In this document: positions 2,201 to 63,190 of the stretch, piece by piece
Layout: each line of letters opens with the position of its first letter
How positions within the stretch are numbered: the stretch's first letter is position 1
Origin: Macrostomum lignano
Lineage: Eukaryota
Reading direction: 5' to 3'
Length of the DNA stretch: 64,000 nt
Assembly (NCBI GenBank): GCA_002269645.1
Contig: NIVC01000513.1
Coordinates: 124,001-188,000, forward strand
The notes under the pieces: model-generated
Seen by the model: the letters and a program-made list of their open reading frames with translations, nothing else
The model's database searches: none
What the model was told of the DNA's origin: nothing
Translations under genes and position numbers: made by a program

Positions 2201-2596
2201 GAAGGTAGCGAATTTCATTGAAGTGTTGGAATGCAAATTCCAGAATCTCTGTGAGTAATATTTTTTCCAACTGGATTCTGCATGATGACTGAGGAAAACT
2301 CAGAACCTTTATCTCCCAATTAAGTATTTGGCATAGTCCTGTTTGCTTGACATTTGAGGCGGGTGAAACTACCCAATTACATTATTTGAAAGCTTCTGTC
2401 TCCATTCGGTAGGCGGATAGTATCGATGGCATTTTTATGCAAATAAATTTAAGCAAATTTCCATGCAAGCATGATGTTTAACATGGGACATTGTCTTGTG
2501 CTAATGCAGTCACTGGTTATTCTTCAGTAAATATTTGAATGCTGGTAGTTTAGAATTGTCCTTTGGTTAAACTTGCAGTTGTCTACATGTACTTCA

Positions 2597-3008
2597 CTCA
2601 TGAACTGGTGAACTGGTGAACTCGTGAACTCATGAACTCATGAACTCGTGAACTCGTGAACTCATGAACTCGTGAACTCGTGAACTCATGAACTCGTGAA
2701 CTCGTGAACTCATGAACTCGTGAACTCGTGAACTCATGAACTCGTGAACTCGTGAACTCATGAACTCATGAACTCATGAACTCGTGAACTCATGAACTAA
2801 TGAACTCATGAACTCGTGAACTCATGAACTCATGAACTCGTGAACTCATGAACTCTTGAACTCGTGAACTCGTGAACTCGTGAACTCGTGAACTCATGAA
2901 CTCGTGAACTCATGAACTCGTGAACTCATGAACTCGTGAACTCATGAACTCGTGAACTCGTGAACTCATGAACTCGTGAACTCATGAACTCGTGAACTCG
3001 TGAACTCG
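2597..3008. repeat. 8-bp tandem repeat (GAACTC[A/G]T)n
   Basis: Directly visible. Confidence 0.95.
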
Positions 3009-3574
3009 CGAACGGACGAAAACGTTCGTTTTCTCACTTGATCTTCACAAGTGTCGCTACGGTTTACAGAGGAGGAAGCAGAATCAAGTAAAGCAAATTT
3101 GAATTTGACATCACCTTTTTGAAAGAAATTTTTCCAGTATCCCTGAGTTTCTTGGTAGATTTAGAAGTTTAAATTCTTATCTTCAATAATCTTATGGTTT
3201 CAGCTCGCTCAGTCACTGTAAAACTTTCGGCAATCAATGTATCAGAAAGTCAGCTTTGTTTGCTGACTAAAAAGCATTTTTTTCATTTTAGCAGCAATTT
3301 TCGCACTTACGGCTCTGGTTATTGGGGGGGGGGAACTCAGCAATAACCGCTAATGCTGTCAAATATTTGCATCTCACTGAGCGGCTTAACTTTGCAGCCA
3401 GACAAACGAATTATTGCTACATTACTCGTACTGTCTTATAAGTATTGTATGCGAGCGAACCTTAAGAAGCTGCATAATTTTAATATCTTTCAAATTTACG
3501 TCAAGATTTTTTTATTCACCAAAGAAGTCGTACGGGAAGTTTAAAATATGGGAAAGAGATAAGGCTAGAGGACA

Positions 3575-3897
3575 ATGGATAAGGGATGGGGATAAAGGAT
3601 AAGGGATAGAGGATAAGGGATAGAGGATAAAGGATAGAGGATAAGGGATAGGGGATAAGGGATGGAGGATAAAGGATAGAGGATAAGGGATAGGGGATAA
3701 GGGATGGAGGATAAAGGATAGAGGATAAGGGATAGGGGATAAGGGATAGGGGATAAGGGATAGGGAATAAGGGATGGAGGATAAAGGATAGAGGATAAGG
3801 GATAGGGGATAAGGGATGGAGGATAAAGGATAGAGGATAAGGGATAGGGGATAAGGGATAGGGGATAAGGGATAGGGAATAAGGGATAGGGGATAAA
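3575..3897. repeat. Purine-rich, about 7-bp tandem repeat (GGATAAG/GGATAGA/GGATAGG)
   Basis: Directly visible. Confidence 0.93.
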
Positions 3898-4196: not shown

Positions 4197-5837
4197 TCTC
4201 GATACTCGACACTCGACACTCGACACTCGACACTCGACACTCGATGCTCGACACTCGATGCTTGACATTCGACACTCGACACTCGAAACTCGATACTAGA
4301 CACTCGACACTCGACACTCGACACTCGATAATCGACACTCGACACTCGATACTCGACACTCGACACTCGATGCTCGACACTCGACACTCGACACTCGATA
4401 ATCGACACTCGACACTCGATAATCGACACTCGACACTCGGTACTCGACACTCGACACTCGACACTCGATCGATACTTGACACTCGACACACGACACTCGA
4501 CACTCGATGCTCGACACTCGATAATCGACACTCGACACTCGATCGATACTCGACACTCGACACTCGACACTCGACACTCGACACTCGACACTCGACACTC
4601 GACACTCGATAATCGACACTCGACACTCGATACTCGACACTCGACACTCGATAATCGACACTCGACACTCGATAATCGACACTCGACACTCGATAATCGA
4701 CACTCGACACTCGGTACTCGACACTCGACACTCGATGCTCGACACTCGACACTCGATAATCGACACTCGACACTCGATCGATACTCGACACTCGACACTC
4801 GACACTCGACACTCGACACTCGACACTCGATACTCGACACTCGACAATCGACACTGGACACTGGACACTGGACACTCGATACTCGACACTCGATACTCGA
4901 CACTCGACACTCGACACTCGACACTCGACACTCGACACTCGATACTCGACACTCGACAATCGACACTCGACACTGGACACTGGACACTCGACACTCGACA
5001 CTCGACACTCGACACTCGACACTCGACACTCGATCGATACTCGACACTCGACACTCGACACTCGATGCTCGACACTCGACACTCGATAATCGACACTCGA
5101 CACTCGATAATCGACACTCGACACTCGGTACTCGACACTCGACACTCGACACTCGATCGATACTTGACACTCGACACTCGACACTCGATGCTCGACACTC
5201 GACACTCGATAATCGACACTCGACACTCGATCGATACTCGACACTCGATAATCGACACTCGACACTCGATACTCGACACTCGACACTCGATGCTCGACAC
5301 TCGACACTCGATAATCGACACTCGACACTCGATAATCGACACTCGACACTCGGTACTCGACACTCGACACTCGATCGATACTCGACACTCGACACTCGAC
5401 ACTCGATGCTCGAAACTCGACACTCGATAATCGACACTCGACACTCGATCGATACTCGACACTCGATACTCGACACTCGACACTCGACACTCGACACTCG
5501 ACACTCGACACTCGACACTCGACACTCGACACTCGATACTCGACACTCGACAATCGACAATGGACACTGGACACTGGACACTCGATACTCGACACTCGAT
5601 ACTCGACACTCGACACTCGACACTCGACACTCGACACTCGATACTCGACACTCGACAATCGACACTCGACACTGGACACTGGACACTCGATAATCGACAC
5701 TCGACACTCGATAATCGACACTCGACACTCGATCGATACTCGACACTCGACACTCGACACTCGATACTCGACACTCGACACTCGACACTCGACACTCGAC
5801 ACTCGACACTCGATGCTCGACACTCGACATTCGACAC
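4197..5837. repeat. 7-bp tandem repeat (ACTCGAC)n with recurring variants (ACTCGAT, AATCGAC, ACTGGAC)
   Basis: Directly visible, about 1.64 kb, CpG/TCGA-rich. Explains the long SSVECRV and STLDTRH ORFs. Confidence 0.97.
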
Positions 5838-6440
5838 TCGGCGCTCAGCACAATAAACTACTGATCGATCATTTCCATCTGAAAATTTTAACTCATGAAC
5901 GAAAATTTATTTCTATAGGAGGGTTAATTAAAAATAAAATGGTAGCAGAAAATTTTTAATAATTGATGAGGACGCACTTTTTTCCAAACCCCGCGCTAGC
6001 ACTGGGCTCTAAACTTACTAGCCTACTAACAGTGGGCAATGGGCATTTTTATCCTTTTTCTGCGAATAGTCATAGAATCTATACTAGATATAATGTCTGG
6101 TCATACTAGTAGTCATAATAACGTAGGCGCAGCTTTTTGGGTCATAAATCATCGCTTTCGAAGCTGGTCTGACAGCCACCTGCGCCTCACTCAGTGTTGA
6201 GGCGGGCGCCAGATGGTCTGAGAGGATGCGGGCGGTAGCTTTTTTCTCATCATTTTGACAGGCCATCAAGATTTATGAGGTCAGAGCCTATGGTTCGGGT
6301 TCACTCAAGCGTGTGACAGCTTTGACAGCTATGCGTTTTACCCCTAAAAGTACTTTGAGATTAGCGATTAGCGATTTCTCTTCATTATCTTCACCTTCTA
6401 TTTAATAAGAGCTTTCTAGTGTATTTTTTTCATTAATTTC

Positions 6441-7176: not shown

Positions 7177-8344
7177 GTTATTTTTATCGGTTTTATTTCT
7201 TTGTTCGCCGATGGCTCAGATGAGTAGCTAAGCTAGTAGGCGCCGGTCACAGTGGACCAATGGCAAGGCAGTTCTCAGTCGATCAATCTATCAAATCAGT
7301 TAGCGAAATTGCCAATAGTGCAAAATAATAGTGCACTCTAGATTCGCCAAGCGGCTCGGGTAATGAATCATGCGGTCTCTGAAGTTCGAGTTAGTCTATC
7401 ATCAGCGCTATGAGAGGCTAGTTGGCGCGTTGAAGGCCAAAAGTACATATCTTCGTATTTAGCAATGTAATAGTACATGTAGGATGTAGCTACCCCATAG
7501 TCTCGCCACTGCAAGAATCCCCTGCACAAGTCCCCTCTGTACCTGCATGGCCAATGCGATCTAGTCCCAGCAGTGTCCCTTATCATCGGCTATGACTTCG
7601 AGATAGACAGCAAAAAGACACTGGTTGGCAGGTAAGTGCGAAGCCCCTTAGTCGGAAGCCCGATTTCGAGAGTCCCGGTGTGGTGAGCCAGGACGTACGG
7701 GCTGGTGGCAGCGAGTTGGCTAACCTGCGGGTTAACTAATTTCTACCTTCAAAATTCTCCCTGCTTGTCTCTCGCTGTCCCTCTCTTAGCTATAGGGCCT
7801 GGACTGCTCGCCACACGATCAAGCTACCATGGGGCTGACCATCTGACAGGAGTGGGGGGCCAGGACTCTAATTGATTTATTTCTGAGACCTGAGGCCCGA
7901 AGGCTTCCCCACAAGGGGGCCGAAAGGCCGAAACCCATCATAATATTTATGTAGTCTTGCAAAAACTTACTAATTTAAACAAAGCAGGTAAAGTTTCTAA
8001 AGTAAATGGCATATGGAGCGCATATTGTATTGAACACTGAAATACTGAATAAATGTGAAGCTCTAAGCTGGTATTTCGATTTTTATGATAATATAATATG
8101 GCCTAGTTTAAGGGGCAACACAAATATGCTTTCACGCTACTGTTAGTAGTTTCAGGTCCAGAAATATCTGTAGATAAATTGTAGTTAACGCTTTGCAAGA
8201 TTTTCTATAAGTAAAGAGTGGGGTGCGTATTTATTATTAAAATTTTGATTCATACAAGTCGAAAGTGTCTGGTTTAAACAGAAAATCTTATAATCATTGA
8301 TTTGACGTCATAAGTTACCAGTTTAGAGACTGAATACTCGTATA

Positions 8345-9358
8345 TCAGTCAGCCAGTTCAACAATCCAACGGTCTGGGTAGTTAGTGTACTCGCAGAAGA
8401 CATTGGTAGTTGAGCCTTCATATTTAATCATATATCCTCCGGGGTAGTACACATTCTGGATGGCGATCGAGTCACCCTCTCTCAGATCAGTTCTATCCAG
8501 CGTCCACAGCTGCTTCTCATTCGACAAGTCGCTGTCGTCTAGGTAGATCCCACCGGCCATGGACGAGTAAAGATACCTGTACCCGCTGAACCTGTATGAG
8601 TAGGCAACGATCCTGTAGGTACCTGGCCTGATTTGTTGAAAGCGAAACTTGTTACTAGCTGAGGATCCCAGCGTACCGGCGTCGTAGCCTCTTCTGTTAG
8701 TGGTTACCAAATACATATTCGAGCTTTCGTGCTTCAACTGCACCCAAGATTGCTCCGTGATGCGCCTCTTCACTTGGTAAGACGCGTGGCAGGACAGAAT
8801 TGGTGGGGGGCTCTCTCTGACTGATTGCGTTCTTTGGAATTTAAAGACTTCACTGTTAGTGCGGACAACAAGCTGCCAGATCTTGGCGACCGACTTTGCT
8901 GGGACAAGCATGGATCCGAGTGTCGCTCTCGGACGTCCGAGATTGGTGGAAATGAATTCCGACACTCCATGAGGGTCGCCAAGGATCTGGGTGGTCACCG
9001 AAATCGATATCAGAGTCTCCCAAGGGACTTTATGAGCATTGTGCAGACTGCGCAAGCCGACATGGTAGTGAAAATTTTGGAGAACTGCTCGTTTTTGAGA
9101 ATTTTCCAGCGTAGCAACCAGCATCCATTGAGCACTGCACGATTTGGATACCGTGTCGCCTGCGGCTTCGGCAGATGTACATATCGCCAGAGCGCACAGG
9201 GCAAGGAGGCTGAGCGCCTGGAGAATTTTTGTAAAAATGAAATGATGAAAAGCAATGGTAAATATGGTCACCACTCTGATCTTGCTACAATGACTCAGTC
9301 ACGTCTTCAAGGCACACAACGTTAAATAGGTTTCTTTTCTTACTTTCTGCTTTATCAT
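8345..9358 (-). CDS. Lysenin-like protein 1 (signal peptide, aerolysin-type module, lysenin-type beta-trefoil), 295 aa, join(9358..9344,9217..8345)
   Basis: ATG ATA AAG CAG AAA|gtaaga plus ttctccag|GCG gives MIKQKALSLLALCALAICTSA. C-terminal motifs SGYRYLYSSMAGGIYLD, KQLW, TNVFC, DRWIVEL match remembered earthworm lysenin SGYEYAYSSDQGGIYFD, KQRW, TNVYC, DKWILEV. The N-terminal W-x7-N-x14-G spacing and WQL are also conserved. Confidence 0.82.
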
Positions 9359-10033
9359 TGAATAGTTTACCTTGTCACTCTTTAATACTCAAGTTTTTAA
9401 TATGGTTTAATTTGACAAATTCAAACAAAATTGAATGAACTCAGATCTTGTTATGCTGCAAAATGCTAACAACGTGACTTCCAAAACTAAAACAAATTTA
9501 AAAAGAACAGGAATGCAAATTTTAACTGCAGGTATGCTTGAACATTAATAATTTGTTATCTATAAAATAGAACTGAGTATTATATGATTCAAACAAAAAG
9601 TTAGCGCACTTACTCGAACCATTTCGGAGCGATGAAGAACGTCGGATGCTGGGTACAAAGTTTGCGGAACTCCAAAGCCGGAGAGGCACGAATTTAAAGA
9701 ATTTATAACTTAGATTGAATTATCGGCTTGGGGCTGACTAAACTTAGTTTCAGATGTTAACATTAATTTATTTAAATTAAATGTAAACAGTTTAAAGAGA
9801 TGCCCTGACTATCGAATAACACTAATAATAGATCTACAAATTTTATTATTAGCAAGTTTTCATAACTAAAACTAGTTTGGAACCTGTCAATTCTGGTTCT
9901 GCAGTTCTGCAGCTCTGAGATGCGGATTTCTAAATGGTTAAAAATTTTGCGCGAAAATCGACTGACTTGTTTCTGGTACTCTATCTTTAAACTCACATAA
10001 ACCAGAGTTAAGAATAAACATAAGTAAATTTGT

Positions 10034-10266
10034 GCCCTGACACCCCTCAGCCCTGACACCCTCAGCCCTGACACCCCTCAGCCCTGACAGCCCTCAGCCC
10101 CCACACACCTCAGCCCTGACACCCCTCAGCCCCCACACCCCTCAGCCCCCACACACCTCAGCCCTGACACCCCTCAGCCCCCACACACCTCAGCCCCCAC
10201 ACACCTCAGCCCTGACACCGGCCTCAGCCCCCACCCCCTCAGCCCCGACACCCCTCAGCCCTGACA
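10034..10266. repeat. 16-bp tandem repeat (GCCCTGACACCCCTCA)n
   Basis: Directly visible between the two lysenin-like genes. Confidence 0.93.
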
Positions 10267-10815
10267 GCCTTGTTGACTGAGTTTTAGCTTGCTTTCAACA
10301 ACAACAACAAAAATACTCCGTCAGGGTCTTGAGAAGTCAGTGTCACATGGTGCACTTCTGGGAAAAGTAGTTAACGAAGGCCGAACGAACTCAGTAACAA
10401 AATTGCCTGTCAAACTCTCAGATGGCGACTCATTTAAGAGCGAAACCGCTGATGCAGCTGCGCCGTAGGATCTGACGGACATTTCCCATTCTCTCTACTG
10501 AAAAGTGGAAGACAAGACATGCAGCGATTTGTTTCGGTTACGCCAAACATCCATAGCGGTTTTAAATTGCTCATTTATTTGGTTATTCGAACAGTGAGAG
10601 TGAAGCAAATAATTTCTGTACCTGCAACGTATGCTATTTGGATGAAACAAAAATAATCCGGTAGAGTTTCAGAAAAAGGTTCGAACGTCTTTGTAGATAT
10701 TACTAATTATTTAGCCTAAATATTCTATTAAATAAAAATCTAGGAAAATCAACCATATTAGAATTCAGCCCGTGTTGTGTACGATTGTTAATTCGTTAAT
10801 TCAGTAATTTTTGGA

Positions 10816-11827
10816 TCAGGCCAGTTCAACAGTCCAATAGTCTGGGTGGCTCGTGTACTCGCAGAACACATTGGTAGTTGAGCCTTCGTACCGGATCATG
10901 TAGGCACCGGGGTAGTATACATTCTCGATGGCGATGGAGTCTCCGGCTCTCAGGTCGCTGGTGCTCAGCGTCCAGAGCTGCTTCCCGTTTGAGGTGTCGC
11001 TATCATCCAAATAGATGCCCCCGGCAAAGGAGGAGTACAGGTAATTGTATCCAGAGAAACGGACTGAGTCGGCAACTATTCTGTAGACACCCGATCTGAT
11101 CTCCTCAAACCTAAACTTGTTGTTCTTGCTTGAGCTCAGCGTCCCAGCGTCCCAACCCTTTCTGTTGGTGGTTGTCAAGTACTTTCCGGTGCCGTCGTGC
11201 CTGAGCTGCACCCAGGTGTTGCCAGTGATGCGCTGCGGCAGCTGGTAAGTGACTTGGCAAGATACTACTGAATACGGCTTTCGTTTATCTCTGAGAGCGA
11301 TCGTTTTCTCAAGGCTCGCAACCTCGCTGCCTGTTCGAGCAACCAGCTGCCAAACATTGACGGTCGCATAGGCTGGAACTTTAAAAGTGCCATATTTAGT
11401 ACTCGGAGTACCTATGCCGGCAGCTGTAGATGGGAATCGCATCCCATCGTCTTTGACTGTCACTAGAATGGACTTCAGTAAGTTCCGGGAGTTTTGAAGC
11501 TTGTGCGCGCCCACTTGATAGTGAAACGATTTCTCAGCTGGTTTCGGGCTCCAGTTCTGGTGCGTGGCCACCAGAGTCCACTGGGCAGAGCAGCGCCGGT
11601 GCATCAGGTCTTCATTGGCGCTTGCGCAGAGTGCCAGGGCAGCGCACAGGACGCCTGCTGCCAGTGCATGTAACTGCAATTTCACAGAGCCGAGTAGACA
11701 AGCAATGAATATTTTTATGAGTATTTTTGTGCACTCGATTCACTCTTTCTAGTCTCTCCCACCCTCTCGATCCATTTTTCTCGGTCTGAATGTAACGTTT
11801 GCAATCGGCTTTGCTTACCGATTTCAC
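10816..11827 (-). CDS. Lysenin-like protein 2; main exon 11673..10816, probable micro-exon 11827..11819 starting with GTG
   Basis: Open 858-nt exon after attgcag| encodes LHALAAGVLCAALALCASA and a clear paralogue of 8345..9358. The upstream GTG AAA TCG|gtaagc is phase 0, but no in-frame ATG was found. Confidence 0.78.
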
Positions 11828-29500: not shown

Positions 29501-30219
29501 TGTCCGCACTGCTCGGCCAGCTGCAGACACGAGCGGCCCAGCCGGTCCAAGTGGTCCACGTCAGATCCTCCGTCCAGCAGCAGCCTGATGACTCTGAGCT
29601 GGCCGGCACGACACGCCCTGGACAGGGCGGTCCAACCCTCGCTGTCCTCAGCTTCCACTGAGGCGCCACGATGGAGAAGTGCCGTGACGAGCTCGTGGTG
29701 TCCCGCGCCGGCAGCCAGCATGAGCGCTGTTTCGTCGCTGCTTATCTTCCAGTCGACATCGGACACGCGAGTCAGCAGGGTAAGCGCCAAAGCCAGGTGA
29801 CCAAGCAAGATACAATGGCGCAGCAACAGACTCGTCTGTTGGTCGGTCAGGTACGCCAGCGTGCGGTCCAAGTCTGCATTGTCCCCAGCAACTGCATTTC
29901 TAGCCATGTTGGACAATGGATTATCGGTTTGGTCGAGCCACATGGGCCGAAGCTCGCGCTGTTGAATTTTGCGCAATTCATCAGCTGGTATCTCTTGCTG
30001 GTCTGCTGAGCTCTTAGCCAGGTAAATTATGTCAAGAATTTGTTCAATGTTTTCACCTGCCCAAGCTGCAGCCGGATGCTCAGTAGACGGTGTATCGTTG
30101 ATCATCCGTGGGCCTTTCGTATCACGATAGTACGAGCTAGCAATGTAGTGGCTGCAGATTTTATTGCCACACAAGCCAGGGAGCGCCAAGCCGGGCCAGA
30201 TTTTAACTAATTGCAGCAT
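26541..30219 (-). CDS. Ankyrin-repeat / Mab-21 (cGAS-like, cGLR) nucleotidyltransferase fusion, about 889 aa, join(30219..29396,29262..28919,28042..26541); start uncertain
   Basis: ANK repeats (ETALMLAAGAGH, GWTALSRACRAG, GRSCLQLAEQCG). GACAA|gtaatg joins catttctag|C in phase 2; ACAG|gtgatc joins gtattcag|GA in phase 1. NTase TGSYADG and DSDID, third acidic residue in RDCVH. Mab-21 C-lobe RVSFSFEEK, LLKF, LKTYNAKT, MPHFFMP. AATAAA follows the stop. Confidence 0.85.
28191..28421. mobile_element. hAT-type MITE in cGLR intron 2
   Basis: Ends CAGGGGTGTATTT and AGATCCGCCACTG; flanks ATTATGGC / CTTATGGC (7/8 TSD); internal GCGCCCC motifs. Confidence 0.6.
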
Positions 30220-30483
30220 TATAAAGGGGCGCAAGAAGAATGATACAGCTAATAAATGGAATAATAAACAGTGGAAAGCAACCAAGCGTGACAAAACAGC
30301 CACAGTCCTTCCAGACAGAGCGAGCGCACCAAAGACAGGCGACCAAACCCCGAGGAGCTTTCGATGCGCACATTGCTCTTATAACTTAAACCAAAGTAAA
30401 AACAACCTACACTGTAACACCAGCTAATCTAGCCTGGCGTGGACTGCACAATGCGCCATGCACTTGCACGCTCAGTGCTTTTC

Positions 30484-30945
30484 GTGGGTGCCCCTGTCTC
30501 TTGGTAGGCGTCCTGGTGGCCGCCCCTGTCTCTTGGTGGGCGTCCTGGTGGGCGCCCCTGTCTCTTGGTGGCCGCCCCTGTCTCTTGGTGGGCGCCCCTG
30601 TCTCTTGGTGGGCGTCCTGGTGGGGCTCCCTGTCTCTTGGTGGGCACCCCTGTCTCTTGGTGGGCACCCCTGTCTCTTGGTGGGCACCCCTGTCTCTTGG
30701 TGGGCACCCCTGTCTCTTGGTGGGCGCCCCTGTCTCTTGGTGGGCACCCCTGTCTCTTGGTGGGCGCCCCTGTCTCTTGGTGGGCACCCCTGTCTCTTGG
30801 TGGGCACCCCTGTCTCTTGGTGGGCGTCTTGGTGGGGCCCCTGTCTCTTGGTGGGCGTCTCTGTCTCTTGGTGGGCGCCCCTGTTTCTTGGTGGGCGCCC
30901 CCTGTCTTTTGGTGGGCGCCCCTGTCTCTAATTGGGCACCCCGAT
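30484..30945. repeat. About 20-bp minisatellite (GGTGGGC[A/G]CCCCTGTCTCTT)n
   Basis: Directly visible. Reverse complement of the unit at 49820-50460. Confidence 0.95.
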
Positions 30946-30947
30946 CT

Positions 30948-31012
30948 TGGTGGAATCGAACCAGGGTTCGTGGCGCGAGAGTCAGACGCGTTTTGCCGCT
31001 GAGCACAAATCA
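30948..31012 (-). mobile_element. tRNA-derived SINE head abutting the minisatellite
   Basis: Minus strand reads GCTCAGCGGCAAAAC (A-box-like) ... GGTTCGATTCC (B box). No complete cloverleaf. Confidence 0.5.
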
Positions 31013-32132
31013 AAACACATGAAACAAACAAAACTATTGAAGGCTCACAGTAGCAGATTATACAGAGAAAAATCACGGATTAAATAAACACCGACAGAAA
31101 TCTTAAATAAAGTTCTGTCAATAGCATGCATATATTTATTCATATATCCTTCTCACCTTATCAATTGTAACACCAACAACTGCATATTGCTGAATTAAAA
31201 CCAATTTATCTAGATACATGTAGCAATTGTTATAATAATCATATCGGGAAACTCACGCATTTCAGCAAATATATGACTCTAAGAGAAATACAGAGAGATG
31301 ATTAACAATAACTCGACATTCATGCCAGTCAAGTGAATTTGGATTTGTAAACAATTTTAAACAAAACAAACCAAACGTAATGCTTTAAGTATTACATTAA
31401 TAGAAATTAATCATCCATATTTTTATGCACAACTCAGAACGTACTCGTAATTATATATATAAAAATTGTCAAAGTAGCATAGAACTAACTGAAGGAATAC
31501 ACAACACCATGGATGTTTCTGGGTGAGCCAGAACTGCAGTACATAGTACTAGCATGTAAATATGCATATTAAATATTGTATACATACATAATTTAATTAG
31601 CCGTTATAATCCGATATTATTCGAAAAAAGTTCTATCAATTATTAATTAGATGCGTCATTTGAGGAAAATTTTGAAAAAACCCGCCGTGACTACTTTTTT
31701 CAGTAGTTTCCTAAACTAAGAGTGCATGGGAACTAAATTTTTTTTTCTCATTTTAAAAAGGCTAAAAACGCTAATTTTGCTACTGAAAAAAGTGAGTAGA
31801 CTGAACGCATATTTTGCGACAGAAATTTTTAAACTCTACTAGGAAGACAAGAGTGAAAAATCTATCAGAAGAACCCAAATAATCAAAATTTCAAGAAACA
31901 GCTACGGTTCAAGGACATCAATGTGACTTTCTATATACAGTATAGGTTTTTAAGTCAGATGTAGTTCTCAGTGTATCATAATTTCATTTTAATAAAACTA
32001 TTTTGACATTCGCAATTGAAATAAACGGGGAATAGCTTTATAGTTTTTATTTCTAAATTTTGAAAAAAAAAATTGATCACTGAACAAAACATTGAAAAAA
32101 GCAACAGAATTCTCTACTAATCTATAACAGAT

Positions 32133-35100: not shown

Positions 35101-38100
35101 CGGGACTATTTAGGGATCTGCAATGATCGGGACTATTTAGGGATCTGCAATGATCGGGACTTCTTAGGGATCTGCAATAATCGGGACTTCTTAGCAATCG
35201 GGACTATTTAGGGATCTGCGATTCGGACATCTGGGGAATGTAGAAGTGGGACTCATGTATTCGCAAAAGAAGAACATTGAAATACTACATTTTAAGGACT
35301 AAATTCGGGACTAAACTCGGGACTAAACTCGGGACTAAGCCTAGAGAAGAGCAGGCAGTCAGTCGGATTACCGTAGCCGTAGCCAGCGACCCAATCTTAA
35401 TGCAGCAGTGCCGGCTGTCGCGCAGAATCTCTTTCTTAAATTCGGCCGCATTGTTTCTCGTCCACATGCTGGCCGGAAGAATTTCCGGTCCAGCCTCTGC
35501 TTCATCATCTCCATCTTGTTGCAGCTGTTGCTGCAGCTGCTGATTGAAATCTTAATTAAATTGGATATTTTTCAGATGCGCAATACCAAAATACTGCTGA
35601 CCAATAGTACGAGAGTAGTAGCAGTAGTATAAACTGAATAATTTAATAAAATTACAAAAAAATAATAAAAAGTTGTCGCGATGCTAAACAAAATACTTGG
35701 CTTAAAAAGCAGTAAAAATTGATCTAAAAAAAAACAGAATTAAAATATTTTATATGCAACTTTTTTCAAACACTATAGATGTTGAATCCCAAAACTCAAA
35801 AGTCCCAGATCACTAAACTACAGATCCCTGATCCCAATACTCCAGAGTCCAGATCACTAAACTACAGATCCCTGATCCCAACACTCCAGAGTCCCAGATC
35901 ACTAAACTACAGATCCCTGATCCCAACACTCCAGAGTCCCAGATCACTAAACTACAGATCGCTGATCCCAACACTCCAGAGTCCCAGATCACTAAACTAC
36001 AGATCCCTGATCCCAATACTCCAGAGTCCCAGATCACTAAACTACAGATCCCTGATCCCAATACTCCAGAGTCCAGATCACTAAACTACAGATCCCTGAT
36101 CCCAACACTCCAGAGTCCCAGATCACTAAACTACAGATCCCTGATCCCAACACTCCAGAGTCCCAGATCACTAAACTACAGATCCCTGATCCCAATACTC
36201 CAGAGTCCAGATCACTAAACTACAGATCCCTGATCCCAACACTCCAGAGTCCCAGATCACTAAACTACAGATCCCTGATCCCAACACTCCAGAGTCCCAG
36301 ATCACTAAACTACAGATCCCTGATCCCAATACTCCAGAGTCCAGATCACTAAACTACAGATCCCTGATCCCAACACTCCAGAGTCCCAGATCACTAAACT
36401 ACAGATCCCTGATCCCAACACTCCAGAGTCCCAGATCACTAAACTACAGATCCCTGATCCCAATACTCCAGAGTCCAGATCACTAAACTACAGATCCCTG
36501 ATCCCAACACTCCAGAGTCCCAGATCACTAAACTACAGATCCCTGATCATAACACTCCAGAGTCCCAGATCACTAAACTACAGATCCCTGATCCCAATAC
36601 TCCAGAGTCCAGATCACTAAACTACAGATCCCTGATCCCAATACTCCAGAGTCCAGATCACTAAACTACAGATCCCTGATCCCAATACTCCAGAGTCCCA
36701 GATCACTAAACTGCAGATCCCTGATCCCAATACTCCAGAGTCCCAGATCACTAAACTACAGATCCCTGATCCCAACACTCCAGAGTCCCACATCACTAAA
36801 CTACAGATCCCTGATCCCAATACTCCAGAGTCCCAGATCACTAAACTACAGATCCCTGATCCCAACACTCCAGAGTCCCAGATCACTAAACTACAGATCC
36901 CTGATCCCAATACTCCAGAGTCCCAGATCACTAAACTGCAGATCCCTGATCCCAATACTCCAGAGTCCCAGATCACTAAACTACAGATCCCTTATCCCAA
37001 CACTCCAGAGTCCCACATCACTAAACTACAGATCCCTGATCCCAACACTTCACAGTCCCAGATCACTAAACTACAGATCCCTGATCCCAATACTCCAGAG
37101 TCCCAGATCACTAAACTACAGATCCCTGATCCCAATACTCCAGAGTCCCAGATCACTAAACTACAGATCCCTGATCCCAACACTCCAGAGTCCCAGATCA
37201 CTAAACTACAGATCCCTGATCCCAATACTCCAGAGTCCCAGATCACTAAACTACAGATCCCTGATCCCAATACTCCAGAGTCCCAGATCACTAAACTACA
37301 GATCCCTGATCCCAACACTCCAGAGTCCCAGATCACTAAACTACAGATCCCTGATCCCAATACTCCAGAGTCCCAGATCACTAAACTGCAGATCCCTGAT
37401 CCCAATACTCCAGATTCCCAGATCACTAAACTACAGATCCCTTATCCCAACACTCCAGAGTCCCACATCACTAAACTACAGATCCCTGATCCCAACACTT
37501 CACAGTCCCAGATCACTAAACTACAGATCCCTGATCCCAACACTCCAGAGTCCCAGATCACTAAACTACAGATCCCTGATCCCAATACTCCAGAGTCCCA
37601 GATCACTAAACTACAGATCCCTGATCCCAACACTCCAGAGTCCCAGATCACTAAACTACAGATCCCTGATCCCAATACTCCAGAGTCCAGATCACTAAAC
37701 TACAGATCCCTGATCCCAATACTCCAGAGTCCCAGATCACTAAACTACAGATCCCTGATCCCAACACTCCAGAGTCCCAGATCACTAAACTACAGATCCC
37801 TGATCCCAATACTCCAGAGTCCCAGATCACTAAACTACAGATCCCTGATCCCAATACTCCAGAGTCCCAGATCACTAAACTACAGATCCCTGATCCCAAT
37901 ACTCCAGATCCCTGACCCCAATACTGCAGAGTCCCGAAACCCTAATACGAGGTGTATTCAAAAAGTTCTTTTCGGTGCCCTACAAAACTGAACACAAAAC
38001 AACTGGAACTATGAAAACACTGTTAGATTGCTTAACATGATTCTGTCACTCAACATATTCACCGCCAATGTCTTTGCACTTCTGCCAGCGATTTACCAGG

Positions 38101-41100
38101 CCTCTGATTCCGGAACTCACACCACTCGCGTCCGTTTGGCGAACAGCTTGATTGCATGCAGCTTCGATGTGCTCGACGCTGTCAAATCGAATGCCCCGAA
38201 GGTGCTTCTTCACAGATGGAAATAAGAAGAAGTCGCACGGCGACAAATCAGGCGAATAGGGTGGATGTTGGAGCACTTCCCAGCCCCATTTGCTCAGGAG
38301 TTCCACGACGTTGTGCTTGCGATGTGCTGGCGCATTGTCGTGCAGCAGGATCACGCCAGATTCCAGCAGACCAGGGCGCTTCTTTCGTATTGCTGGGCGC
38401 AGCTTCTCCTGCAGAATCCACTTGTAGTAGTCCCCATTGACGGTGGTTCCTTGTGGGACTGCCCAGTTCAGCAGGATTCCTTGGGAATCAAAAAACATGA
38501 CGTGCATGATCTTTATCGCGCCCTGCTTCCTGATGGCCTTCTGAGGTCTTGGAGAATGTGCTGGAAGCCATTCGGCAGACTGGGCCTTTGTCTCAGGATC
38601 CCAGCTGTAAACCCACGTCTCGTCTCCAGCAACAATTCTTGATAGAAAATCCTCCCCTTCTCGATGGAACCGACGCAGGTGGCTGCTTGAAGCCAGAGTT
38701 CGCTGCATCTTTTGCTCACCTGTCAGCAGGTGTGGCACCCACTTGCAGAACTTTTTCTGTAGGAGAAGACGCTCAGTCAGAATAGTGTGGACGCTTCCTA
38801 CTGACACACCAACGTCTTCTGCCAACTCTTCGCAAGTCCGTCGCCGATCATCATCCAGGAGCTCTTGCACTTTCTTCACAGCAGTCTCTTTGGTTGCAGC
38901 CATCGGCCTTCCAGAGCGGCCATTGTCCTCAACGCTCTCTCTTCCCTCAGCGAACAGCCGGTACCATTTTCGAACTGTCTGCTCAGTTGGTGCACAGTTG
39001 CCAAGCACTTGCTGAAGCTCCCTAAACATATCCGGTGGCTTTTTTCCTTGCAGAAACTGAAACTTCATCAAGCTTCGAACGTCTTGCTTTGAAAATGATT
39101 CAGTCATGGCCAAGAAATTGAGTGGCAGCTGATAGAAATGTTCGCTGCTCTAACATAGTTGCAAACTGAGACTTAAAACCCTAGGAACGTTTAGGCCATA
39201 GACATAACTTGGTAAAATCGCTAAAATTCTGTTTACAACGCTTTCTAAAAATAAATGCCAAAGGACCGAAAAGAACTTTTTGAATAAACCTCGTAAAACA
39301 AAAGCAACAAATCCCCATAAAATAAATCCCGTCTCACCCTCAGCTGCAGCCGCCTCAACAGTTGCAGACTCATTCGTAGAATTCTGTTGACTTTGCTTTG
39401 GCTGCTGCTGCAACAGTTTTGCTTGCTCTTCTTCTTGTTGAATTTTCAACTGCTGCTGATAGACCTGAGTCATGTACTGCTGGAAGTGCTGCTCCTGCAG
39501 CTGAGCGATCAGCTCTGCCTGCTTGTTGGCGTCGCCTGGATGCTGCTCGGCGGCGTATTGGCGAAATTGGACAGCCGTCTGCTGGTTCAGCGCCGCCCGA
39601 ATCTGAGCTCTGCTCGGATATGGATGGTGAGAACGGGGGGGGGGAGATGAGTGCCTGAGGCGCTATGCTGAATCCATCCGCACTTGATGGGGCTGTAGCC
39701 TAGTCATACTATACATGCCTCTTGAAAGAAAGCTAAGCAAAAGAAACGTAATTTTGGGTAAACGGAAGGAGCAACTCTAACCATATTTTTAAGGCTAAAT
39801 GCCTCGCCACCTAAGTAGTATGGTTAGAGCGTCGGAGTTATGATTGAAAGGTTGGGGGTTCGAATCCCACTACCACTAGGAACAATTTGTGACCTTGAGC
39901 AAGATGGGTCCCAGCATTAGCTGGGGTAATTGAGGGTGTTTGTGGCGACCCCCCAGCAATAGCTGCGGCTGAGCTGTCGGTTGCACATCTGAGCATTAAA
40001 GGCAGGTATAATCAACTAACTATTAATTATTATTAAACCATTAGGGCCAATCAGTGCCAATAACATCTCAGGAGTCTGCAGAATGGGCAGTACTGCCGCC
40101 AGGGTGGCCCACACCATTCCTGCAGTACATTATATTACCCGTTGAAAACATAACGACTCAAATGCGACGGAGGCGTGATTTTCAGAATCGTAAAAGAGTC
40201 TCACGCAACTCAGTGATTCTAAAGCGACTCTTTGACGAGATTTTTCAATAAGCGAATTGCATTGCTAGTTCAGATGCTAAAAATAAGATGGAGCTGTCAC
40301 TCACTCCTGCTGATGACGCCGCGAGTCATCTCTGTTGGTTACAGGACCAGACACTGAGTTTGTCTTCTGATTGGCCAAGTTCTGCTTGGCTGCCGCTTCG
40401 GCTTGCTTACGCTGCTGCTGCTGCATCTGCTCCTGCTCTTGCTGCTTCTGGCGTTGAATTTCGCGTCTGAGAATTTTTTAAATAGGGCGCATTGTTGCAT
40501 GTCAGTTTCTTTTATTTTTATGATTCTAAAGATTAATCTCATGCTTCAACCTATCGATCTCTCACTCCAATCTATCAATCACACACTCCAACCTATCAAT
40601 CTCACACTCCAATCTATCAATCACACACTCCAATCTAACAATCTCGCACTCCAATCTATCAATCACACACTCCAATCCATCAATCACACACTCCAATCTA
40701 TCAATCTCACATCCCAATCTATCAATCTCGCACTCAAATCTATCAATCTCGCACTCCAATCTATCAATCTCGCACTCCAATCTATCAATCTCACACTCCA
40801 ATCTATCAATCTCACACTCCAATCTATCAATCTCGCACTCCAATCTATCAATCTCGCACTCCAATCTATCAATCTCGCACTGCAATCTATCAATCTCACA
40901 CTCCAATCTATCAATCTCACACTCGTCTATCAATCTCAGACTCCAATCTATAAATCTCGCATACTCTAATCTGCAAATCCCATATCTCCATGTCAATCTC
41001 ATACTACAACCCATCAATCGCTCACTCTTTGGCCTCGGCCTCCTCCTTAATCTTATTCTCCCGATCCCGTTTCTCATTGAGATGCGCCTCCAGGTAGGGC

Positions 41101-57358: not shown

Positions 57359-60300
57359 TGGCAAAAATACCGAAGACAACCCACTGGAGCGCATCCCGAC
57401 CAATAATCGCACTATTATCGGAGGCGACTTCAACGCCCACGGCGCTTGGGATTACCACATGGAAGAGGACCAGCGAGGACAGCGCGTCGAGGAATGGGCA
57501 ACCAGAAATGGGCTGGCTATCTGCAACAGCAATGCACATACCAGGACTAGCCCCGCCACCGGCAAACGGTCAACCCCGGACATTACCTGCGTTTCCGGCT
57601 CCTTGGCCAAAACGGTCACACGCAGCTGGAGGACTGGACCAGACTGCGGTAGCGACCACCTCCCGATCCTGTTCAACGCCGCGGCGCCCCGTCCAGTGCA
57701 TAAACGAGGCCCCCCGCTGGAACTATCGCAAAGCGAACTGGACAACCTACAAGTCGGAACTCCAGGCCAACCATTGCGCCCAACAGCCCAACCCTATTGG
57801 GTCAGCGGCGAACGCCATGACCATTGACCAGGAGGCCGAAGCGCTCAGCAGCATGATCCTGAAGGCAGCACATAAGAGCATCCCGAGAGGCAGCACGGCG
57901 GGACGTCGGGCCCCATTCTAGTCCGAAGCCTGCTCAAATGCTTGCGCGGAAACCCAAGCTGCCCGGTCCCAAGCTGAGGAACTTCAGACCCAAGAGGCCA
58001 TTACAGCCTTCAACAGAGCCCGTCACCAAGCCGCCAAGGTCATTAGAAAACAGCGCCGCGATCACCTCGAACAGCGCACGGAAGTGCTCGATGCCAACTC
58101 TGACCTTTTTAAGCTGCTCAGATCTATGCGCGGCGAAGCGCCCACGGGACGCGACCCTGCGGCAATTAGCAGTCCGGCCTCCGGCAGCCGCCCGGCGCGC
58201 ACCTGCAACTCCGATAAAGAAAAGGCAAATCTCTTCTGCCAGCTTTATGCCGAGGTTAGCAGGGTTGAACGACGGGCGAATGACGCAGCCATCCGCTACG
58301 AAGCCAACAGCGGCCTCCGGCAGTCCGAAGAGGAGGCCCAAGACCCGACTGCGGCCGACTTCATGCTGGCGAACTCCGCACCGCGCTCCGTAAATTGAAG
58401 TCCGGTAAGGCGGCCGGCCCGGATGGCGTCAGCAACGAAATGCTTAAGCACCTACCAGCGGAGATTGACGAACGCCTGCTGCACCTCATCAACCGCAGCT
58501 GGAAAGACGGCTCCACGCCGAACAGCTGGCGCCGAGCGGTCATCATCCCACCAGCGGAGATTGACGAACGCCTGCTGCACCTCATCAACCGCAGCTGGAA
58601 AGACGGCTCCACGCCGAACAAGCGGTCATCATCCCAGTGCCAGCCCAGAGCAGCTATCGACCGGTCGCGCTTACGAGCTGCGTCGCCAAGTGCGCCGAAC
58701 GTATAGTGCTAGCCAGACTCAACTGGACGCTAGAAACCAAGAGCCTCCTGACGCCCTGCCAGGCTGGCTTCCGCCGACACCGCGGCTGCGACGAGCAGAT
58801 AGCCAGGATATGTCAGGATATTTTCGACGGCCTTGAATCGCAGCCTCCCATCCGCAGCATTCTTGCCCTGTTAGACTTCTGTCGCGCCTACGACAGGGTT
58901 TGGAGAGCAGCGCTTTATGCCAAGATGCTCTGCATGGGGATCAACCGCCGCATCATCAGATGGGTCCGCGGTTTCCTCTGCCAACACAGGGCAGCGGTGA
59001 AGTGGAACGCTGCCACCAGCCGCGAGCGCTGCTTCAGGGAAGGACTGCCACAGGGCAGCGTCCTCGCACCTACGCTTTGGAACTGCTACATTAACGACCT
59101 ACCGGAAGCCATCTCGCGGGCAGCCCCTCAATCAGCAGTCAGCCTCTACGCAGATGACTCGGCCATCCTCTGCTCAGCCACCACTCTTCAGCGCTGCACA
59201 ATCAATCTTCAACCGGCCCTTGACGCAGCCGCTGAATGGTGCCGCCGGTGGAAGGTCGAACTTAGCCCCAACAAGTGCTGTTTCACGACCTTTTCGCTGG
59301 CACCCAACGAGACCAATGGGAAAGTTCGCCCGCACCTCAGCATCTGCGGCGAGCCTCTGCAGTTTGAGCTCCACCCGACTTTCCTCGGCGTCAAACTTGA
59401 TGGCCAGCTAACGTTCCAACATCATGTGGCGGATATCCGCCGCCGCATGGCAGTCCGCCGACGGCCCCTCGCCGCCCTGGCGACTCGTAGCGGTGGCGCC
59501 TCCTTCCACGTCCTCCGCACTGCCTACATCGCCACTGTGCGTGCTATTGCCGACTACGCATGCGGAATCTGGGGTGCCTTTGCAGTGCCGAGCAGCAGGC
59601 TTCTCATCGAACGGCAACAGTTCTGCTGCGCCAGGATCATCTCGGGGTGCATTAAGCCCACAAACGTCAGGGCGCTCCTCGCGGCCGCAGACCTGCCGCC
59701 CATCGGACACCTGATCCTGGAGAGAGCGGCGACCTTGCGGGAACGGGCTCTGAGGCTGCCCGGGGAGGTCCCGGTGCACCAGACTGCCGCTAGACCCTGC
59801 CTGCCCCGCCTGAAATCCCGTGCTCACGAGGCGTGGCTACGGGAGCAACACCCGGTGGATGACCAGGTCCTGCTGGAGAGCGACTACCGCAGGCCTTTCC
59901 GTGGTTGCTGGAGGCGCGCCGCACTGGAGCTCGGCATCAACGCCCTCGAGCCAGCGGGGATGCGCGCCCCCTTCCCGATGCCCGAGCCGCCATGGCAGTC
60001 ACCCAGCGAAGTCAGCTTCGACACCAGCCTGCAGGTCACCTGCGGCCGCAAAGTGCCGGACAGCATCAGACGGGAGAGAGCCATCAATGCCCTGGAATCC
60101 AGACCTCAACACGATATCGTCATCTGGACTGACGGCAGCGCCACGGACGGCTGCCGGGACGGCCATGGCGCGGCCGTCCTGCACACCCTCCTCTGGGGCG
60201 AAGTACACACGACAGCCGCTGGCTCCGTCTGCAGCAGCACGACGGCGGAGCTAGCGGCTATAGCTCTAGGCATCCGCCGCTGCCTACAGCTCCAGCAACC

Positions 60301-60941
60301 ACACGGGGGCAGCATCGACATTCTCACGGACAGCATGGCGGGCATCCTCACCCTGCAGCGCAGGCCAGCTGACCAACGCGAGCCCATGGGACAGCTGGTG
60401 TGGAGCCTGCTCAGTCAAGAAGCTCGCCCGGTCCGCATTACCTGGGTGCCGGCCCACGTCGGCGTTGATGGCAACAAAAGAGCCGACAAGGCGGCGAACC
60501 GGGCTTCGGACCTGACGCAGGACCAGCCCATCGCCTTCGAAGCCGCCAGGGCTGCCATCAAACGAGCCAGGCGACACCTCGATCTCAAGCTCTTGAACCG
60601 TAGCTCGCCCTGGAAGCGCTACGGCGGCCTGACTCGTGGCGAGACGGTGGCGGTTTGCCAATTGAGGGCCGGCTGCAGCACAGCCTGCGCGGCCACCCGC
60701 TACTGTATCGGCCTTACCGAGACTCCACTCTGTCCGGACTGCGGAGACGAAGACACAGAAGAGCACCTCCTGCAGCAGTGTCCACGCGGAGACTCCGCCC
60801 GCCTTGCTCACCCTCTCGACCTCAACGACGCGGGCGGAATCTGCCGGTATCTGAGGATGATGGGGCGGCCTGCAGGTCGCCCTCCCCCCCAGCCGCCGGA
60901 CAGCGGCGACGCGGGGGCTGCGTAGAAGAAAAAGAAGAAGA
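57359..60941 (+). mobile_element. LINE A: 5'-truncated Ingi/I-group non-LTR retrotransposon (partial APE, RT, RNase H, zinc knuckle)
   Basis: GGDFNAH...SDHLPI; RT with GLPQGSVLAP and YADD; RNase H WTDGS...TDS...WVPAHVG; CPDC..EHLLQQC; (GAA)n tail; 12-bp TSD AGCAGCACAACA at 57347-57358 and 60942-60953. Stops and frameshifts present. Confidence 0.92.
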
Positions 60942-60958
60942 AGCAGCACAACAGCACC

Positions 60959-63190
60959 ATGGCCGCGGTCATGGGCATCGCCTCTACCTGGCGACCCGGA
61001 TGGTTGGACAGCTACGACTGTGCCAAGATGCCCAACCCTAGACAACCGCCTCCCCTGGTACACGACTACATCACAACTGCGGCGCAAGGCGATGATCACT
61101 TCCCGGTGTCTAGACATGTCATCATTGTCATCAGCCTCTTTTTCTGGCTCAGTTTGCTCGCCCAGCTTGCAGGCGACATTGAACTAAACCCTGGGCCCGA
61201 CTGCGACTGCTGCGGTTGCCCCATCAGAAGAGGCTTGAACTTCCTCTCCTGCCAGTCCAGTTAGTGCCCCACCCGCTGCCACAAGCAACCATCTTGCAGC
61301 GGCATCTGCTGATACCAACAGAACCAACACTTGCACTGCCAACATTACAGCAGATCAGAGCGCACCCCCTGCAACTCGCCAACCGCGGAGGCAGCTACCC
61401 CTGGCAACTGCAGTGCCTGCTCGGGCCCAATCCACTCTGGCACCACTCCGCTACGGTGCGAAACCGCCGGCTGCACGTCAACCTGCCACCATACAACCAA
61501 ATGCAGCAGCATCCCGCGCTTCAAGGGCTGCCCTCGCTGGCGCTGCCCCATCTACACCCCACCTGCGGTGAGATCCCTGGCTGGCCGCCCGATCGTGGAT
61601 AGGCGCCCCGCGGCTGCCAGTCACCCCCACCCGCCGATTCAAGACTCCGGCTGCTGCAGCGGGTGCTATTTTCTCTTCCGCTCTAACCACCACCCCATCG
61701 CCTGCCGTCAGTGTAATGCTAAGTTCCACAAGAAATGTACCCGTCTTACCAGGCTTGCAGCCAACCTGGCTGCCACCCAGGGTCACTGGACCTGCCTGGC
61801 CTGCACCTCAACAAAAGTGGCACACGAGACGGCAGTCACTAACCAGACCACAACTCAGGCCCAGACTTCCACCCAGTGCGCCTGCCTCCGCACCACAACC
61901 CTCCAGGAACCCCTGCTGATTCTTCAGTGGAATGCGGACAGCATCTCAACCTGGGTCACCGAGCTGGCAAACTGCATCAACTCTCTCAAACCAGACCTGA
62001 TTCTGATCCAGGAGTCCAAACTGCTCCTGCAGGACCCCACCCCTTGCCTCCATGGTTACGCCGCAGTTCGGGTAGACCGCAAGCAGCCGGATGGTGGAGG
62101 TGGGCTGCTCACATTCATCCGGGACTGTCTCGCATTCGAACGCAAGCTGGTGACGACCTGCGAGCCAATCGAAACCTGCCGCGTACGTATCTTCCTAAGC
62201 TCTAAGAAATCCTTGGATGTGGATAACGTATACGTCCTGCCTGTCTATGGCGGCAAAGAACACAGCGAGGTACTCTGGTCAACCCTCCCAACAAACGCCA
62301 ACCTGCTCGCCGGCAACTTCAATGCCCACTCGGCCATCTGGGACCAGACCCAACTGGCCAATGGTTGTGGCAACACCCTGCTGGACTGGGCCACTGAACA
62401 TGGCTTGATGGTCATGAATAACGGCTCACCAACCAGAATTAACCGCGGTACAGGTGGCAAGAGCACGCCAGATGTATCGCTTTGCCGCAACGCTTGGCAT
62501 CACTGCACCTCTTGGAGTACCCTCGACGACCTCAGCTCCGACCACCTCCCAATCGCCATCCACCTCCGCTGCACCACCAAGAATCTCCATTGTCAGACCA
62601 GGACTTTCTAGAGAAGCACCGGGGTAGACTGGATAGCATTTGCCCAGGACGTCGACTCCCAAGTCGCCACCTTCAAAAGCACCGGCGTCTCATTCAAACA
62701 ACGAGCCAGCCGCCTCACGGAGGCCATCATAGCATCGGCATACTGCCATGTGGGGAAAAAGTCCTCCAACAACCAGCCCGGCCCTGGCTCTCCCAGGAGG
62801 CTTGCGAGGCCATCCGCAAGCGCAATTGCCTCAGCAGAGACGTCGGTAACCGCCGTGCCAAATGGCTCCAAGCCTGTGCAGACGCCACTACACTCTCCTG
62901 CAAGAGCAAGGAATAGAGCTGGCGGGAATTCCTGTGCGACACCGACCTATTCCAAGATGCCACCAAGGCCTGGCACCTTGTCCGCAGCCTTAGTGGTACC
63001 CCAGGCGATAACACCACTAATGAGGCCCTGTCCATCAGAGACAAAACCTACTGCAACAATGCGAGTAAGGCTGAGATCTTCATCAAGCACTACAAGGCGG
63101 TCAACCGTCTCCACTTCAACAAAGCTGACTGCGCCATCAACTGCTCTGCTAAGTCTGCCGTATGCGCCTACGACACCAACCAGGAGGCTG
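60959..63190 (+). mobile_element. LINE B: 5' part of an Ingi-like element (2A motif, PHD fingers, APE endonuclease), RT missing
   Basis: GDIELNPGP at 61172-61198; PHD-like C-x2-C...H-x2-C...W-x-C-x2-C; APE motifs QWNADS, IQESK, GGGLL, GNFNAH, TPDVS, SDHLPI. Broken frames; ends at a tandem repeat. Confidence 0.88.

Follow-up and report, generated by a model that had tools for sequence, protein, structure and literature searches.

Introduction

Lysenin, a toxin of earthworms that punctures membranes, serves as a standard probe for sphingomyelin and as a scaffold for nanopores. Together with the lysenin-related proteins LRP-1/2/3 of Eisenia fetida and E. andrei (PDB 3ZXD, 3ZX7, 3ZXG, 5EC5, and 5GAQ), it represents a family that is confined to earthworms, essentially to Eisenia, in named protein records and the searchable literature. 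A survey in 2017 listed four lysenin-like sequences, all from Eisenia (PMC5654971), and a genome paper reported that lysenin is absent from the annelid Enchytraeus crypticus (PMC8460440). In the literature that we searched, the terms lysenin-like, lysenin-related, lysenin family, and lysenin homolog concern earthworms or lysenin as a reagent, and none concerns a flatworm. In this study, we analyzed a 64,000-nucleotide (nt) stretch of DNA (assembly GCA_002269645.1, contig NIVC01000513.1, positions 124,001 to 188,000; hereafter the window) from Macrostomum lignano, a macrostomorph flatworm. It carries a tandem pair of genes for proteins that resemble lysenin. The downstream gene, at the lower coordinates, was designated A and the upstream gene B.

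Biomphalysin, natterin-like Dln1, LSL, and the hydralysins have a common logic with the A and B proteins, in which a soluble monomer combines lectin or trefoil targeting with an aerolysin-type module that has an insertion hairpin. However, their domain order and targeting domains differ from those of A and B, and there is no direct sequence relationship. The earthworm proteins have the same domain order as A and B, with an N-terminal module followed by a C-terminal trefoil, and identity to them is 26-27% overall and 39% in the trefoil.

Homology of the A and B proteins to lysenin

The A and B proteins were searched against the PDB (177,635 sequences) using phmmer. Lysenin entries were the only matches of A, with an expectation value (E) of 4.6e-20, and the only matches of B (5EC5, 3ZX7, and 5GAQ; E 4.6e-21), with residues 101-288 of B placed on residues 106-296 of lysenin. 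Matches of this strength lie far beyond chance. A sequence-only reading of the window had assigned the pair to the lysenin family from the motifs SGY.Y.YSS..GGIY.D, KQ.W, TNV.C, and D.W..E, the N-terminal spacing of W, N, and G, and a WQL motif. All four motifs aligned with PDB lysenin in the HMMER alignments. The N-terminal spacing in the family alignment was equal to that of lysenin (8 residues from W to N and 15 from N to G), and WQL was aligned. A 15-member family profile that includes A and B covered lysenin from residue 4 to 296 with an E of 2.4e-98. The same profile gave an E of only 0.14-0.17 against parasporin-2 (2ZTB) and a natterin-like protein (5ZU4), and no direct match to aerolysin or epsilon-toxin was obtained in the family profile search or with Foldseek against the PDB.

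The two domains were then compared separately using hhalign, in which a profile of the M. lignano pair was aligned to a profile of the remaining family members. The trefoil was matched with a probability of 99.9 and an E of 3e-31, and the whole N module with an E of 4e-5 over 118 columns. An AlphaFold2 (AF2) model built from the 15-sequence family alignment had a predicted local distance difference test score (pLDDT) of 87.1 and a predicted template modelling score (pTM) of 0.72. In the Foldseek search, the best 16 matches were all lysenin. Its monomers matched at E 3e-21 to 1e-20 with 24% identity over 290 aligned columns and a query TM-score (TMq) of 0.58-0.67, while the TMq of trefoil-only proteins was 0.40 or less. 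The trefoil matches Mitsuba-1, ThreeFoil, and Phifoil had a target TM-score (TMt) of 0.70-0.75. The sequence-only reading had named two outcomes that would contradict it, a predicted structure without the lysenin fold and best matches among unrelated trefoil lectins. Neither was found, since lysenin was the only PDB sequence match and the AF2 fold matched lysenin ahead of trefoil-only proteins.

Three points weigh against this assignment, mainly in the N-terminal part. The first ~100 residues alone showed weak profile similarity in hhalign (probability 21%). AF2 run on an alignment of the two paralogues gave a pLDDT of 37 and no usable model. In addition, the N-terminal fold predicted by AF2 is not fully independent evidence because the input alignment consisted of lysenin-family sequences. 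Pfam scans of A and B gave nothing above threshold. RicinB_lectin_2 scored 16.6 bits in B against a cut-off of 25.6 and did not match A; the fold is nonetheless a trefoil according to Foldseek. Lysenin itself also matches no Pfam family, and the public M. lignano copy has therefore remained unnamed. Judged from the sequence comparisons and the predicted fold, A and B almost certainly belong to the lysenin family by homology.

Gene structure and predicted secretion

The window contains two long minus-strand open reading frames (ORFs), at 8345..9274 (309 amino acids (aa) as called mechanically) and 10816..11685 (289 aa as called mechanically). In neither is the hydrophobic leader preceded by an in-frame ATG, and the mechanical starts are GTG, a codon at which translation would not start in a eukaryote. 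In both genes, a phase-0 AG acceptor immediately precedes the hydrophobic stretch. At 398 nt upstream in B we found ATGATTCCG followed by GTGAGT, and at 396 nt upstream in A, ATGGTTCGA followed by GTAAGT. The resulting gene models are as follows.

8345-9622, minus strand: gene A, two coding exons, product of 293 aa
9614..9622, minus strand: gene A coding exon 1, ATG GTT CGA (Met-Val-Arg), then donor GTAAGT
9218..9613, minus strand: gene A intron, 396 nt, phase 0, GT..AG, with a pyrimidine-rich tract and the acceptor ...ttctccag
8345..9217, minus strand: gene A coding exon 2, 290 codons plus TGA
9164..9217, minus strand: remainder of the predicted signal peptide of A, residues 4-21, ALSLLALCALAICTSAEA, predicted cut between AEA and AGD (Kyte-Doolittle rules)
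9163..8762, minus strand: predicted pore-forming module of A, residues 22-155
8761..8348, minus strand: trefoil of A, residues 156-293
8230..8235, minus strand: candidate poly(A) signal AATAAA of gene A, ~110 nt past the stop codon, called from the sequence
10816-12080, minus strand: gene B, two coding exons, product of 288 aa
12072..12080, minus strand: gene B coding exon 1, ATG ATT CCG (Met-Ile-Pro), then donor GTGAGT, read from the sequence
11674..12071, minus strand: gene B intron, 398 nt, phase 0, GT..AG, acceptor ...attgcag
10816..11673, minus strand: gene B coding exon 2, 285 codons plus TGA, 99% identical to BOX15_Mlig014210g2
11617..11673, minus strand: remainder of the predicted signal peptide of B, residues 4-22, LHALAAGVLCAALALCASA, predicted cut between ASA and NED (Kyte-Doolittle rules)
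11230..11616, minus strand: predicted N-terminal aerolysin-type pore-forming module of B, residues 23-151 (AF2, Foldseek, hhalign), including the shortened hairpin segment 49-102 and the WQL motif
10819..11229, minus strand: C-terminal beta-trefoil of B, homologue of the lysenin head domain, residues 152-288 (hhalign, hmmsearch limits, Foldseek)

The sequence-only reading had located the two ORFs correctly and had given the pair an extent of 8345-11827. With the 9-nt first coding exons found upstream, the pair spans 8345-12080.

A different source of the start codon was also considered. The spliced leader of M. lignano is 35 nt long and ends in ...TTGCATG, and ~30% of the genes are trans-spliced (PMC8629364). 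Trans-splicing of this leader, which ends in ATG, at the exon-2 acceptor would give M+LHALAAG... and M+ALSLLAL.... Both acceptors are in phase 0 directly before the hydrophobic core, and an AUG donated by the leader would therefore also give a valid signal peptide. We first favored this explanation and demoted it after the conserved mini-exons were found. A and B both have an ATG, two further codons, and a consensus GT donor at nearly the same distance, although their intron sequences can no longer be aligned. Since the introns no longer align, the two-exon layout common to A and B is conserved and was not recently copied. The pattern ATGN6GTRAGT, expected just 1.2 times per window, occurs four times, and two of the four are the exon-1 sites of A and B. 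The mini-exon of B gives the N-terminus MIPLHAL..., in agreement with the NCBI model (P0001) for the sister copy. This copy lies on contig NIVC01000472.1 of the same assembly (locus L003), where the annotated B gene spans 1263 nt and encodes 288 aa. The 15-mer at the mini-exon of A recurs unchanged ahead of the A copy in L003. Against these data, a start codon donated by the leader is improbable.

Signal peptides were called by rules, namely a Kyte-Doolittle hydrophobic core and small residues at -3/-1. The 10-residue Kyte-Doolittle means of the cores were 3.01 for A and 2.78 for B, and both have Ala-x-Ala cut sites. The product of gene A starts with MVRALSLLALCALAICTSAEA, followed by AGD after the cut, and that of gene B with MIPLHALAAGVLCAALALCASA, followed by NED. 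From these features, A and B are predicted to have classical cleavable signal peptides that are completed by the mini-exons. The signal peptides proposed by the sequence-only reading are thus supported, but the long ORFs lack an ATG, and a first exon of three codons is needed. It had also presented the added signal peptides as a novelty. The aligned lysenin sequence does begin without a hydrophobic leader; however, the feature is not unique to the pair, since the relatives P0012, P0035, and P0046 also start with hydrophobic leaders. A conserved candidate for an extra Cys pair (Cys31 and Cys142 in B) is a further difference from lysenin.

Host, sister copy, and selection

The host proposed by the sequence-only reading, a flatworm, is the right one. 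The NCBI record [quoted passage not shown] is 99% identical to B. The sister contig is 96-97% identical to the window across 6.5 kb and carries the tandem A/B pair together with flavin monooxygenase (FMO)-like neighbors, as in the window. At 12507-13800 of L003 there is an intact copy of A with the same mini-exon and a 96% identical protein; no gene is annotated there, and only the B copy has been called. The two genes are tandem paralogues, as had been claimed. Both are on the minus strand, their products are 55% identical across 273 residues (E 2e-106) and 74% identical in the trefoil, and tblastn gave no third copy within the 64-kb window.

The ratio of nonsynonymous to synonymous substitution rates (dN/dS) was 0.12 between the two B copies (synonymous divergence, dS, 0.025), 0.21 between the two A copies (dS 0.088), and 0.27 between A and B (dS 1.39). 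By part, dN/dS between A and B was 0.19 in the trefoil, which is more constrained, and 0.34 in the N part; the N part gave 0.24 between the A copies. These results show that A and B are old and have been maintained under purifying selection.

The public assembly has no annotation for gene A, and the family has an extremely patchy distribution, as might be expected if A and B were pseudogenes in decay, contamination of the assembly, or a foreign insertion that is very recent and functionless. However, the frames are uninterrupted in both genomic copies, with the low dN/dS given above, both genes have spliceosomal introns with consensus sites, and the paralogues have stayed intact since an old split. 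Both copies of the pair are also flanked by intron-containing FMO-like genes and by repeats and transposons of the M. lignano type. Explanations of this kind are highly improbable; dN/dS, introns, and synteny led us to reject both pseudogenes and contamination. The pair is a true flatworm locus and not contamination.

Lipid-binding residues

We compared the residues of A and B with those of lysenin in an L-INS-i alignment, with the role of each residue as described for the structures of lysenin (PMC3526787).

Trp20 (supports the sphingomyelin site): kept in A and B
Gln117 (sphingomyelin headgroup): kept in A and B
Lys21 (sphingomyelin headgroup): Thr in B, Met in A
Tyr24 (acyl-tail platform): Ala in both
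Tyr26 (acyl-tail platform): His in B, Leu in A
Glu128 (sphingomyelin headgroup): Ser in B, Lys in A
Lys185 (phosphocholine pocket): Lys in B, Arg in A
Ser227 (phosphocholine pocket): kept in A and B
Tyr233 (phosphocholine pocket): kept in A and B
Gln229 (pocket gate): Ala in both
Tyr282 (phosphocholine pocket): Phe in both

The replacements at Lys21, Tyr24, Tyr26, Glu128, Gln229, and Tyr282 weigh against a mechanism that copies that of lysenin. The sphingomyelin site formed by Lys21, Tyr24, Tyr26, and Glu128 is not conserved, and only Trp20 and Gln117 are left of it; the site is characteristic of lysenin itself. In the phosphocholine pocket, three of the five lysenin residues are retained, counting Lys185, which is Arg in A. 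Sphingomyelin binding was almost abolished in a Tyr24/Tyr26 double mutant of lysenin. A and B lack the Tyr24/Tyr26 platform, and it would therefore be premature to regard them as specific for sphingomyelin. The replacement of the residues that confer this specificity suggests that the target lipid is probably one other than sphingomyelin.

Hairpin segment and pore formation

The entire 10-nm barrel of the lysenin pore is built from the 74 aa of Val34-Ile107, of which Val54-Ser86 (33 residues) accounts for the 4 nm below the cap (PMC4865846). In the L-INS-i alignment, the equivalent segment has a length of 54 aa in B and of 61 aa in A, 13-20 residues less than in lysenin. Among the other full-length family members, nine have a segment of 73-78 aa, and P0002 has one of 62 aa. 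Both the shortening and its possible consequence speak against a pore. If the deletion lies below the cap, B would be left with 13 aligned residues there, which would be too few for a bilayer. Pore competence should therefore not be assumed, and the barrel, if formed, would be shorter than that of lysenin. The candidate membrane hairpin of A consists of ISISVTTQI, the turn GDPHG, and VSEFISTNL, and is clearly amphipathic, its score ranking second within the hairpin segment. The amphipathic hairpin of B is weaker and less clear than that of A.

We therefore weighed a lytic role of the pair against a role in binding alone. In the latter, A and B would be secreted lysenin-family lipid- or glycan-binding (lectin-like) proteins without pore formation, for example pattern-recognition or adhesion factors. 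Besides the short hairpin segment, the Ser+Thr content of this segment (0.18-0.19 in A and B against 0.31 in lysenin) and the loss of the sphingomyelin site are in line with this explanation. So are the better conservation of the trefoil, in both dN/dS and identity, and the occurrence of the trefoil without the lysenin N module in P0011 and P0016. However, the N module is still under purifying selection, both between the paralogues and between the A copies. It also retains the W, N, G, and WQL anchors, a predicted lysenin-like fold, and an amphipathic hairpin with a Gly/Asp turn, and a hairpin segment of similar length is found in P0002. Binding without pore formation is the main alternative, but it is less probable than a lytic role.

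Pore formation by A and B is plausible from this analysis. We consider it fairly probable that the two genes are functional tandem duplicates of two exons each that encode secreted lysenin-family pore formers acting by the full mechanism. By analogy with lysenin, the mature monomer would be released outside the cell, and the trefoil would dock on a lipid headgroup of the target membrane through a pocket that is partly phosphocholine-like. The monomers would then form a ring, and the amphipathic hairpin of the N module would unfurl into a beta-barrel. The use in defence or predation that the sequence-only reading had suggested is conjecture, and the pair might serve immunity, defence, or the lysis of prey.

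Distribution and relatives of the family

The family is very rare: when 1.84 billion representative proteins were scanned exhaustively using HMMER, only 27 matches were obtained at E <=0.001, of which 10 were at <=1e-10. A word-indexed homologue search gave one match, and four with an alignment as the query. Apart from the M. lignano protein, all scan matches were unnamed and came from ~1-kb transcript-like contigs of read archives or metagenomes. Contigs from the runs SRR14039766 and SRR11827441 had no spliced leader or other sequence indicative of their origin, and neither these accessions nor Mlig014210 turned up in the literature that we searched. With lysenin as the query, the sole named match was Eisenia lysenin-related protein 2. 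The relatives P0002-P0005, P0008, P0009, P0012, P0013, P0023, and P0046 have the same two-domain architecture as A and B, with 20-30% identity; P0002 has a short hairpin segment like that of the pair, while those of the other listed relatives are 73-78 aa.

The C-terminal trefoil of the lysenin type also occurs in other arrangements. In P0015 (545 aa) it is fused to a MACPF/perforin domain (Pfam E 8e-30), and in P0017 (229 aa) it is fused to a beta/gamma-crystallin domain. P0011 and P0016 have the trefoil alone behind a signal peptide, with no lysenin N module. Since it is also attached to MACPF and beta/gamma-crystallin domains, the lysenin-type trefoil may be seen as a portable membrane-targeting module.

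In a neighbor-joining tree of the trefoils, which is rough and without support values, the M. lignano pair was placed outside the group of lysenin and the other two-domain proteins, near proteins with a trefoil alone or fused to MACPF. As a tentative extension, the pair may be a separate secreted branch with a short hairpin within a sparse, wider lysenin superfamily in which the trefoil is portable. Such a branch might act on a non-sphingomyelin lipid and form a barrel several nm shorter, or an A/B hetero-oligomer.

Surroundings of the pair

The window also contains many tandem repeats, retrotransposon and mariner ORFs, and FMO-like exons. The features outside the two genes are listed below.

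225-1316, 2596-3013, 3546-3896, and 4198-5840: tandem arrays just downstream of gene A (25-nt unit x 44, 8-nt x 52, 14-nt x 25, and 7-nt x 239)
10034-10266: spacer between A and B, a G/C-strand-biased tandem repeat with a 16-nt unit x 14.6 (also a 48-nt unit)
~13487-17300 and ~21950-25400, plus strand: exon fragments of two FMO-like flavin monooxygenase genes, with a GAGPSG dinucleotide-binding motif and a Pyr_redox_3 match
18258-19316: reverse-transcriptase fragment between the two FMO-like genes
26541-28079, minus strand: intronless ORF of 512 aa, Mab-21 C-terminal domain at 23.7 bits against a cut-off of 24.1 (Pfam)
29392-30303, minus strand: ankyrin-repeat ORF of 303 aa that adjoins the 512-aa ORF
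30407-31076: Pro/Arg/Gly-rich tandem repeat with overlapping ORFs on both strands (...PPRDRGAHQETG...), probably a non-coding satellite
38046-39113, minus strand: intact mariner/Mos1-type transposase ORF of 355 aa, with HTH_48, Transposase_1, and DDE_3 matches
58637-60925, plus strand: ORF of 762 aa with reverse transcriptase and RNase H, a non-LTR retrotransposon in a G+C-rich block (62%)
61331-62611, plus strand: separate endonuclease ORF of 426 aa (Exo_endo_phos) in the same G+C-rich block, probably the beginning of a second element

The arrays downstream of gene A yield long spurious ORFs in several frames, and similar arrays flank the pair in L003. From its near-threshold domain match, the 512-aa ORF may encode a cGAS/Mab21-like nucleotidyltransferase.

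Implications for the lysenin family

The pair represents a divergent flatworm lineage of secreted lysenin-family proteins. That it is undescribed, as the sequence-only reading had suspected, was borne out by the public records: the B copy is a "hypothetical protein" at NCBI, the A copy is not annotated, Pfam has no lysenin family, and the literature that we searched has no flatworm lysenin. The public annotation can thus be corrected for both genes, B being named only as hypothetical and A not having been called. The pair could be a mechanistic variant on account of its short hairpin, altered lipid site, and signal for secretion. As natural variants in hairpin length and lipid-binding surface, A and B would be useful for questions of barrel length and lipid specificity. 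Their presence in M. lignano implies that the lysenin family is older or more mobile than thought, and in this tractable flatworm model the in vivo role of a lysenin-type protein could be tested.

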